Part shown: piece after piece, positions 47,601 through 50,600 of the stretch
How positions within the stretch are numbered: position 1 is the first letter of the stretch
Layout: each line of letters opens with the position of its first letter
Assembly (NCBI RefSeq): GCF_006345805.1
Contig: NC_043023.1
Location: 5,084,001 to 5,148,000 of the forward strand
Direction of reading: 5' to 3'
Source of the DNA: Octopus sinensis
Taxonomy: Eukaryota
Length of the DNA: 64,000 bases
Translations under genes and position numbers: made by a program
The notes under the pieces: generated by a model
What the model was told of the DNA's origin: nothing
The model's database searches: none
The model's input: the letters and a program-made list of their open reading frames with translations, nothing else

Positions 47601-50600
47601 AGGTGAAATACCGCTAAGCGTTTCGCCCGGCGTGCTAACGTTTCTGCCAGCTCGCTGCCTTATTCTGATTCTGCTATCTTGCTGCTTTTACATACAAATA
47701 TAATAATGAGTTCAAATTTTGGCACAAGGCCAGCAATTCTGGGAGATGAGGTAAGTCGATTACATTAACCTCAGTACACAACTGGTACTTATTTCATCTG
47801 CTCCGAAAGGCTGAAAGGCAAAGCTGATCTCAGTGAAATTTGAACTGAGAACATAAAGATGGATGATATGTCACTAAGCATTTCATCTGGCTAAAGATTC
47901 TTATTTCTTTATTGCCCACAAGGGGCTAAACATAGAGGGGACAAACAAGGACAGACATAGGGATTAAGTCGATTACATCAACCCCAGTGCGTAACTGGTA
48001 CTTAATTTATCGACCCTGACAGGACGAAAGCAAAGTCGATCTCAGCTAAATTTGAACTCAAAACGTAACGGCAGATGAAATATCGCTAAGCATTTTGCCT
48101 GACACGCTAATGTTTCTGCCAGCTTGCTGCCTTAAATCTGGCTTAAGATTCTGCCAGGTGACTGCCTTTCAAGATAGCTATACATATCAGTTACAAATTT
48201 TGGCACAAGGCCAACATTTTTGAGGGGTGGGGGATGGGTTAGTTGATGACATCAACCCCAGCGCTTAACTGGTATTTATTTTATCAACTCTGAAAGGATG
48301 AAAGGTAAAGTCGACCTCAGTGGAATTTGAATGCAGGATGGGACAACGGATGAAATGCCACTCAGCCTTTTTCTGCCAACTTTTAAGATACATATTAACA
48401 GATAAACAAATACACATACAGATAGATACATAGAGACAAAAATGATGGAGTTAAAAAGAAAAAAAAGAGGGAAGGAAGGAAATCAGTAATAATACCTTGT
48501 AAAGGAGAGTGTTTCAACAGGAGGCTGTGTAAACAGGCTGAAGCTGTTTCTTCGAGCCAGGCCAATAATATGGTGTGGTGGTCACAATCTTCATTTTTAT
48601 TTTCTTGGTTCTAAACACACAGGCAAATACATCTATACATATATATATAAAATTTAAAGGACTGACCACTAAAAGTGGACAGCCAATATGCTAGATATAG
48701 ACATCAAAATCACTATTTTCCACGAAGAATGTTTTCTCAAGAAAAAACTCAGCACAAAACTAAAGTGTAAAAAATAAGCAAGACAAATGAAAATATACGA
48801 AATCAAAAACGATTACCTATGTACCGATCAGTTTCACTTGTTAATATTCACGTATATGCATACATGAAAATCTGCAAGATCATCAGCATAGTCTCGTTTA
48901 CAAACATAATTTCCAGAACTAGATACATAACGTTATGTATCTAGTTCTGGAAATTATGTTTGTAAACGAGACTATGCTGATGATCTTGCAGATTTTCATG
49001 TATGCATATACGTGAATATTAACAAGTGAAACTGATCGGTACATAGGTAATCGTTTTTGATTTCGTATATTTTCATTTGTCTTGCTTATTTTTTACACTT
49101 TAGTTTTGTGCTGAGTTTTTTCTTGAGAAAACATTCTTCGTGGAAAATAGCGATTTTGATGTCTATATCTAGCATATTGACCGTCCACTTTTAGTGGTCA
49201 GTCCTTTAAATTTTGTATGTAAAAAATATTTTAATCTTTGGATTTTTTTAATATGCTAGGCCACTGGTTTTAATTGATTAATATCAATTTCTACCCTTAT
49301 TCAATTATATATATATATGTATATATATGTGTGTGTGTGTGGTGTGTGTGTGTGAGTTGGAAGAGCCTCAATGGAGTTATTAAACAAACTAAAACAACAG
49401 CAAAGTCCATACCCTACCGTATTAAAGGACACATTAAATAATGTACTCCTAGATATACTATGTTTGAATAAATGACACAACAGTCACTGCTGGAACATCT
49501 CTGATTATAGGTCTGCTGTATTAGCACTGATCTGGGCTTAAACAACAACAACAACAACATCAACTGCTATAGCCACAAATATTAACTACTATATTATACA
49601 TTAGATAATGTAGTGCTAGGTACACTATGTATGAATGAAAGATGGGATGGTCACAACTGGAACGTCTTTGATCGTAGGCCTGCTGCATCAGGAATAACCT
49701 GGGGCTAAACAACAACTACTATAGCCACTAATACTAACTACAAAGTGGTCACTAGGAAAGCAGAAGATTTGAAGGCAAAGCTAATGAGCCTTAATTGGAT
49801 CACCAATAAACTGTGTGATGGGTGGTTTCTGGTTCGCTGTTTCTGCCATGGAATGAGCACGCAATAATAACAAGCATTGATGTCATTTGCTTCTGAGTGA
49901 ACCCCACATCATGGGAGAAAGCTGGGGAAGGGAACAGCTGTCAGACTTTCAGAGACAAATTATTGTTCTTTTCAAGGGTGAAAATCTGATTTGGGGAGTG
50001 ACTAAATGTTTAACTGTGTTACCAAACTTTTTTTCAACTACCACAAGGCATCAGTTTGATAGTGTTGTGGCAACCTTGAAATGAGAAGGACCTCAAACAG
50101 CCAGTGCTCACAAAAAAGAGACTGGACCAAAGAAACGGATTTCGAAGGAATACGCGACACAGTTAGGAATTTTGTTGTGTCACGTGGTCAAAAAGACACA
50201 ATGGTGAGACATTTAAGTCAATGAGAAATTGCTAAACATCTCAATATTTCAAAAACATCTGTGTTTGAAATTCTCAAAGAAAGTGAATTGAAGTGCTATA
50301 GGCATAGGAGTGGCTGTGTGGTAAGTAGCTTGCTTATGAACCACATGGTTCCGGGTTCAGTCCCACTGCATGGCACTATGGGCAAGTGTCTTTCACTATA
50401 GCCTCAGGCCGAGCAAATCCTTGTGAGTGGATTTGGTAGACGGAAACTGAAAGAAGGCCATCGTATATATGTATATACATGTGTGTGTGTGTGTGTATAT
50501 GTTTGTGTGTCTGTATTTGCCCCCCCCCCCCCAACATCACTTGACAACCAATGCTGGTGTGTTTACGTCCCCGTAACTTAGCAGTTCAGCAAAAGAGACC

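Follow-up and report, generated by a model that had tools for sequence, protein, structure and literature searches.

A spacerless, hammerhead-bearing palindrome in a MEI1-like intron of Octopus sinensis, probably a head-to-head Penelope-type insertion

Insertions of Penelope-like elements (PLEs) show strong 5' truncation and often have an inverted, 5'-truncated copy adjoining them; their hammerhead ribozymes lie near the 3' end or in a pseudo-long terminal repeat (pLTR), and their targets are microsatellites or (TA)n (PMC8557442). Palindromic junctions between head-to-head copies have been described as by-products of PLE integration (Arkhipova et al. 2013, PMC3846280; Craig et al. 2021, PMC8557442). 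PLEs prefer AT-rich and (TA)n targets (PMC8557442, PMC11167929). AT-rich DNA is cut by a PLE protein purified from a lizard, which then extends each of the two strands, beginning both times at one internal RNA stem-loop (PMC11167929). Here we describe a 566-bp palindrome in an intron of a MEI1-like gene of Octopus sinensis, each arm of which carries a hammerhead motif. It lies in a stretch of 64,000 nucleotides (assembly GCF_006345805.1, contig NC_043023.1, positions 5,084,001 to 5,148,000), which we call the window and whose numbering is used throughout.

Two other described systems come close to this locus. The hammerheads of PLEs have a long helix II and a palindromic helix III, depend on dimers and are of low activity; they are said to escape standard searches (PMC4209133). 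In Schistosoma mansoni, pairs of minimal hammerheads (min-hammerheads) 100-700 bp apart on opposite strands have been ascribed to truncated PLEs (Cervera & De la Pena 2014, PMC4209133). Non-LTR retrozymes, often intronic, are units of 170-400 nt with low GC content that are now seen as non-autonomous PLE derivatives akin to pLTRs (bioRxiv 10.64898/2026.07.22.740005). We found no description of hammerhead-bearing elements from octopus in the literature searched.

We propose that the palindrome is probably a single insertion, in which the 3'-most ~283 nt of a hammerhead-bearing Penelope-type element are present twice. The copies would be joined head-to-head at their 5' ends, with their 3' ends at a TA-rich microsatellite in the MEI1-like intron. 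The source could be either a severely 5'-truncated PLE, or a solo pLTR, or a non-autonomous 'retrozyme-like' unit mobilised by a PLE. On this reading the palindrome is a clean example of Penelope-type head-to-head insertion in a cephalopod, an arrangement of a kind already known. What it chiefly offers is a view of the mechanism: two unrelated palindromes, both equal-armed and spacer-poor, favour self-priming or copy-back during integration over two independent priming events.

The palindrome and its host gene

The centre of the palindrome falls between positions 48931 and 48932. The arms on either side are 283 bp each, with a spacer of 0, and they differ at exactly three paired positions (48712/49151, 48683/49180 and 48681/49182), for an identity of 98.9%. 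A repeat finder stretches the arms to 290 bp by accepting two more mismatches; the 7 bp gained belong to the TA-rich flank, where a match could be fortuitous. The palindrome itself, 69% AT, is impossible as a chance product. The arms, their flanks and the neighbouring parts of the gene are as follows.

48932-49214, + strand: right arm, an element copy of 283 nt whose sense strand is +, running from a 5' end at the centre of the palindrome to an outward-facing 3' end (…GUCCUUUAAAUUUU); 31% GC
48649-48931, - strand: left arm, the other copy of the element, with - as its sense strand, as in the MEI1-like pre-mRNA; differs from the right arm at 48712, 48683 and 48681
49179-49203, + strand, with its mirror at 48684-48660, - strand: 3'-terminal stem-loop, ~11 nt from the 3' end of the element
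48638-48648, no strand: target-site context, a CA(TA)n microsatellite, CA(TA)5, touching the left edge; the right flank, 49215-49240, is AT-rich (GTATGTAAAAAATATTTTAA)
48496-48610, - strand: 115-nt exon of the MEI1-like gene, with acceptor AG at 48612-48611 and donor GT at 48495-48494; residues 865-902 of XP_036370263.1
48611-51716, - strand: host intron, 3.1 kb, whose 3' end holds the palindrome; preceded by the exon at 51818-51717

The edge of the palindrome is 37 nt from the acceptor AG. Because the 115 nt of the exon are not a multiple of three, skipping it would shift the reading frame. Its 38-residue translation (48497-48610, - strand) matched a single protein among 1.84 billion representatives, with 100% identity over residues 865-902 of 1246. 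That protein, XP_036370263.1, is named 'meiosis inhibitor protein 1-like [Octopus sinensis]'. A member of the same cluster from O. bimaculoides, whose gene spans ~195 kb, contains the Pfam domain MEI1_N (PF28582). Within the window, 17 exons of the MEI1-like protein are collinear on the minus strand, from 63876 to 26535, and the annotated mRNA model contains the exon at 48496-48610. The MEI1 identity is thus supported at the level of automated annotation. An earlier note on this DNA had claimed a palindrome with 283-bp arms, no spacer and three mismatches, all of which we found again at 48649-49214. It had also placed a MEI1 acceptor AG at 48611-48612, about 37 nt away; the peptide identity and the collinear exons bear this out.

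All three arm mismatches are transitions: they would appear as G·U wobbles in RNA of the MEI1 sense and as A·C mismatches in the antisense RNA. Two of the three fall in the 3'-terminal stem-loop, which folds at -13.4 kcal/mol in the left version and at -9.3 kcal/mol in the right. By analogy, this may be the counterpart of the stem-loop at which PLE reverse transcription begins.

Hammerhead motifs and the RNA hairpin

Each arm contains the elements of a type I hammerhead. Read 5' to 3', an outer helix I (AAACGA/UCGUUU) and an inner helix I (CUAUG/CAUAG) are separated by an internal loop (GA/GUAA); the core sequence CUGAUGA follows, then a 44-nt helix II that starts with U·U at 10.1/11.1 and continues as CUUG/CAAG, the core sequence GAA, helix III (ACUGAUCGGU) and A17. 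Over the whole motif the arms do not differ.

48964-49056, + strand: type I hammerhead of the right arm, with helix I at 48964-48969/49051-49056 and 48972-48976/49042-49046
48977-49041, + strand: right-arm core, with CUGAUGA 48977-48983, helix II 48984-49027, GAA 49028-49030, helix III 49031-49040 and A17 49041
49041/49042, + strand: predicted cleavage site of the right arm
48807-48899, - strand: mirror hammerhead of the left arm, with CUGAUGA 48886-48880 and A17 48822
48822/48821, - strand: predicted cleavage site of the left arm, 210 nt upstream of the acceptor AG

The conserved core is complete: C3U4G5A6N7G8A9, G12A13A14, A15.1 (49031), U16.1 (49040) and an H17 that is not G, all of them the same in the left arm. 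Three helices surround the core, with helix I open-ended, and the constrained fold has an energy of -20.2 kcal/mol. Predicted cleavage falls 173 nt short of the 3' end in either arm, so that the hammerhead is 3'-proximal, and the centre of the palindrome lies 109 nt upstream of the cleavage site; the two sites are 220 nt apart. In the MEI1-like pre-mRNA, only the left-arm hammerhead has the sense orientation. The loop in stem I, the long stem II, the quasi-palindromic stem III and the U-U at the base of stem II that had been proposed for the motif are all present in both arms.

Is a motif of this complexity to be expected by chance in AT-rich DNA? The descriptor for the search was written after the candidate had been seen, and it was therefore judged against two controls: block shuffles, and 539 decoy descriptors in which the core boxes were permuted while the helix rules and the real sequence were left unchanged. 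The true core finds four sites at three independent loci in the window (both arms; 46613-46678, +; 55861-55950, +). The shuffles give 0.02 sites, and the decoy cores a mean of 0.04 and a maximum of 1 (n=539). From this comparison it follows that hammerhead-type junctions are truly enriched in the window.

The folding predictions place the hammerhead in the dimer-dependent, low-activity class described for PLEs and retrozymes. The lowest-energy fold of the monomer, at about -25 kcal/mol, pairs CUGAU with AUCGG and is an inactive alternative, and the active fold is predicted to be about 5 kcal/mol costlier. When two copies are cofolded, the minimum-energy structure is a double hammerhead in which a helix III of 10 bp links the two molecules and leaves both cores free (-54.6 versus 2 x -24.5 kcal/mol).

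In the longer transcript the two arms would pair with each other. Whichever strand is transcribed, the antisense arm is made before the sense ribozyme. For the full hairpin the predicted energy is -464 kcal/mol on the + strand and -476 kcal/mol on the - strand, against -20 kcal/mol for the ribozyme fold. By these energies the MEI1-like pre-mRNA would certainly form an RNA duplex of ~283 bp, perfect bar three G·U pairs, that would bury the lone sense hammerhead at 48899-48807. The earlier note had proposed just such a geometry, with the antisense arm transcribed first and the sense ribozyme sequestered; the order of the arms holds, and the predicted hairpin energy dwarfs that of the ribozyme fold. 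On this model we do not expect the MEI1 transcript to cleave itself. The hammerhead is probably inactive even when unmasked, since it belongs by prediction to a low-activity, dimer-dependent class and each transcript has a single sense copy with no tandem partner.

Covariance models of microRNA precursors also matched the palindrome, all below their gathering thresholds (in bits, MIR4208 76 against 140, MIR7994 61 against 100, MIR2599 60 against 120, mir-3149 49 against 100). The matches are symmetric on both strands, as generic matches to a long hairpin would be, and we rejected them as artefacts.

Origin of the palindrome

How does the locus compare with described PLE insertions? With PLEs that have inverted pLTRs or head-to-head copies (PMC3846280, PMC8557442) it shares the head-to-head palindromic junction, the 5' truncation, the 3'-proximal hammerhead and the AT-rich or (TA)n target. 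It differs from them in that no open reading frame (ORF) or direct pLTR lies between or beside the arms, which are only two short non-coding copies. It differs as well in being a spacerless palindrome of 566 bp, whereas the published cases have an overlap or a junction palindrome of 15-38 bp, and in that its homology to an autonomous PLE is putative. The head-to-head form, the 3'-proximal hammerhead and the TA-rich target support the link to the inverted ends of PLE insertions that had been drawn in the earlier note.

With PLE min-hammerheads and type I retrozymes (PMC4209133, PMC7229834), the motif shares its type I topology and CUGAUGA/GAAA/UH core, its long helix II and a short, quasi-palindromic helix III that permits a double hammerhead. 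At 283 nt and 31% GC, the arm falls in the retrozyme range (170-400 nt, <45% GC), and its U·U is also found in the axolotl hammerhead HHR_Amex2. Retrozymes, however, form tandem arrays, head to tail, from which circular RNAs arise, whereas here the copies stand head-to-head, with one sense ribozyme per transcript. Helix II, at 44 nt, is much longer than described, the G10.1-C11.1 pair is absent, and cleavage is, in this case, a prediction. Non-LTR retrozymes are recognised by a head-to-tail tandem of at least two units; the palindrome contains none, and the partial tandem in its vicinity is the element at 46392-46942 described below. The dual min-hammerheads of S. mansoni are alike in lying on opposite strands, at distances that can be set beside the 220 nt between cleavage sites here; they are mentioned in one sentence, which does not state whether the pairs are spacerless (PMC4209133).

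A second near-perfect palindrome occupies 56263-56531, in another intron of the MEI1-like gene. It is 269 bp long, with arms of 134 nt, two mismatches and a single nucleotide at the centre (G at 56397). In sequence it is unrelated to the 566-bp palindrome; a hammerhead core is lacking, and a (TA)n/(TACA)n microsatellite at 56225-56262 adjoins it.

The element at 46392-46942 contains an unrelated hammerhead (46613-46678, +). It is a partial tandem with a period of 493 and a terminal direct repeat of 58 nt at 98% identity. It sits inside (TA)n, antisense to the gene, ~64 nt upstream of the acceptor of the MEI1 exon at ~46325-46227, and it looks like a retrozyme- or pLTR-type unit.

In the third hammerhead (55861-55950, +), helix II has a C/A mismatch at its base and helix III (ACAGCUGU) is a perfect palindrome. 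About 1.4 kb upstream of it, on the same strand, is a decayed ORF whose linker reads CNCx5Cx5C…NVVY; CxC…C linkers with a VVY start are typical of PLE endonuclease regions. The region 54130-56222 is probably the tail of a degraded PLE that ends at (TA)n, at ~56222, in the very microsatellite that adjoins the second palindrome. At 20800-19104 (-), an ORF resembling a reverse transcriptase (RT), with FDISNFY…YRDD motifs, is followed by a GIY-YIG-like ORF, the canonical PLE order. A related RT-like remnant lies at 4543-5649 (+), and the two RT-like remnants are 32-52% identical. A relaxed min-hammerhead scan near the PLE coding remnants found no extra motifs. We considered whether the three hammerhead elements are homologous and rejected the idea: global alignment gave no homology, and a 10-mer shared downstream of two of the hammerheads (TGTCTTGCTT) did not extend.

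How would two copies of one element come to lie 5' end to 5' end with nothing between them? In the scheme that we favour, a PLE reverse transcriptase/GIY-YIG endonuclease would cut the AT-rich target, and cDNA would be primed from the 3' stem-loop of the element. After ~283 nt the nascent cDNA would template itself, by self-priming or snap-back, so that the second arm copies the first. The arms would then be equal and spacerless because one was copied from the other. Alternatively, both cut strands would be primed and an end-to-end template jump would follow. We favour copy-back at integration because two unrelated elements have equal arms with 0-1 nt between them, and independent cDNAs would rarely stop at one and the same nucleotide. 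We also considered that the 5' end of a ribozyme-cleaved RNA had set the length of the arms. This was rejected because the palindrome centre lies upstream of the cleavage site by 109 nt, which means that the template was uncleaved. The palindromic geometry reflects the way in which such elements integrate and is not a property of this locus, because the second, unrelated palindrome and the partial-tandem hammerhead element are both found at TA-microsatellites as well.

Several observations weigh against a Penelope-type insertion. In the hammerhead, the G10.1-C11.1 pair that usually closes helix II is replaced by U·U, followed by C-G, U-A, U-A and G-C; the usual pair is termed highly conserved among PLE hammerheads (PMC4209133). 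The same U·U stands at the base of helix II in HHR_Amex2, which is active: 22% was cleaved in an hour as a monomer, and cleavage was much better as a dimer (PMC7229834). Rfam hammerhead covariance models gave no match at the gathering score in the whole window and none at E<=10 in intervals of 1.1 kb, 121 nt and 111 nt, and for this reason the hammerhead call rests on the descriptor. No clear target-site duplication flanks the palindrome, and no 'tail' can be defined. By blastn, the 64-kb window holds no further copy of the arm, and in sequence the arm resembles neither the PLE-like remnants nor the other hammerhead elements there. Two metagenome scans, one for an exact 29-mer and one for a gapped core pattern, found 0 matches in collections that are without cephalopod DNA. 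As to the remnants, the GIY-YIG-like match is just below the Pfam cutoff (21.4 versus 22.6 bits, E=3e-4), and searches of Pfam, NCBIfam and PDB sequences with the RT-like ORF were negative, so that it is known as an RT from the reading of its motifs only. The multi-copy status of the arm and its homology to an autonomous PLE are therefore putative, and we infer the copy-back step, as we do the integration mechanism as a whole.

Could the palindrome have arisen after the insertion? A single copy might have inserted and been doubled later, by a replication template switch or by hairpin-mediated break repair at its 5' edge, or the whole might be a fold-back DNA transposon of the miniature inverted-repeat (MITE) type with hammerhead-like motifs in its inverted repeats. 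Fold-back repair can yield spacerless palindromes; no target-site duplication, poly(A) tail or 'tail' was identified, and comparisons within the window gave no homology to a PLE. We nevertheless think these origins unlikely. Two unrelated spacerless head-to-head elements with their outer ends at TA-microsatellites fit an integration machinery better than two repair accidents, a complete hammerhead of a kind enriched in the window points to the world of PLEs and retrozymes, and the flanks are unlike the TA/TA duplication of a Tc1/mariner-type MITE. A more prosaic possibility is that the second arm was made in the assembly, by a fold-back or chimeric read or by a mis-join. Inverted and tandem PLE structures are known to trouble assemblies (PMC8557442). 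The pattern of arm differences also fits, for they occur only at the outer ends, as they would if polishing were blind to the inner regions of the arms. All three differences fall within the outer 64 of 283 nt in the 566-bp palindrome, and both differences within the outer 14 of 134 nt in the second one (56267-56276 / 56518-56527); under a uniform distribution the joint chance of such clustering is ~1e-4. Short-read polishing could have homogenised the inner arms, in which case the true divergence may be higher than the identity given above; centre-out gene conversion is the biological alternative. Even so, an artefact is highly improbable. The TA-rich flanks differ on the two sides, are unique and continue the exon order of the gene. 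The duplicated unit matches a TA-bounded element exactly and not some arbitrary local sequence, the arms are not identical, and a second, independent palindrome of like style lies 7 kb away. Such structures are, moreover, documented for PLEs (PMC3846280).

The palindrome might instead be a functional module, a 'self-masked ribozyme' or source of double-stranded RNA that would alter how the MEI1 exon is spliced or A-to-I edited, or would cleave the pre-mRNA under some conditions. Coleoids edit their RNA heavily, the RNA hairpin is certain to form, and the three mismatches become G·U pairs on the MEI1 sense strand. The exon whose acceptor is 37 nt away is frame-shifting, and the hammerhead is the only sense one among the three loci in MEI1 introns. 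Against this, insertion explains the geometry, and a second palindrome of unrelated sequence is built alike; the annotated mRNA has the exon; and the ribozyme class is weakly active and dimer-dependent. Arm identity of 98.9% suggests a young and probably neutral insertion. The earlier note had suggested that the masked ribozyme could affect splicing or editing of this exon, in a gene needed for meiotic double-strand breaks; neither such an effect nor a bearing on meiosis finds support in the present evidence. We regard a functional module as very unlikely, and a head-to-head Penelope-type insertion remains the reading that we prefer.

Consequences for the gene, and other features of the window

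If the palindrome is such an insertion, what does it do now? Probably nothing that is selected. Its position in an intron is unremarkable in itself, because the annotated mRNA retains the exon and ~43% of retrozyme copies in Xenopus are intronic (bioRxiv 10.64898/2026.07.22.740005). Two propensities of the locus are generic to any intronic inverted repeat. As RNA, an intronic duplex of ~283 bp is a plausible substrate for ADAR or Dicer; as DNA, an AT-rich palindrome of 566 bp is a plausible cruciform-prone site. The duplex, 37 nt from an acceptor, offers a natural test case for side-effects on editing and splicing, and the palindrome is a candidate fragile site. Unless effects on splicing, editing or fragility are found, current understanding is unchanged.

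Two familiar classes of inverted repeat offer a comparison. Inverted Alu pairs are intronic inverted repeats that fold into double-stranded RNA and are ADAR substrates. The octopus palindrome is likewise an intronic source of such RNA; its arms, however, are contiguous and near-perfect, whereas an Alu pair consists of two separate, diverged insertions. Human palindromic AT-rich repeats (PATRRs) are near-perfect, spacerless palindromes of several hundred bp that are predicted to form cruciforms. AT-richness and form are the same here; the difference is the origin, here a probable retroelement insertion.

A broader idea links masking to retention. Octopus genes might tolerate sense intronic hammerheads only when an adjacent inverted copy neutralises them, so that head-to-head insertions are preferentially retained in the sense orientation within introns, and their perfect hairpins might serve as local ADAR or Dicer substrates that tune the inclusion or recoding of neighbouring exons, in this case a frame-shifting exon of a gene for meiotic double-strand breaks. 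An anecdote from the window speaks for it: the masked hammerhead is the one sense copy in the MEI1 introns, the other two loci being antisense to the gene. We consider the idea highly speculative and its truth improbable.

The remaining observations concern smaller features. The 45-residue ORF in the arm had no candidates in the protein catalogue, and ARAGORN found no tRNA- or SINE-like (short interspersed nuclear element-like) heads in the window. The ORF at 41503-41790 (-) has, by eye only, a C-terminal motif like that of a mariner transposase; Pfam gave no match at E<=0.01. Outside the MEI1-like gene, an inverted repeat of 103 nt (843-945 / 1218-1320) has arms that are 97% identical. One of them overlaps a non-repetitive ORF (1269-1634, -), and the 272-nt spacer holds inverted telomere-like motifs (AACCCTAACCCTAA / TTAGGGTTAGGG).

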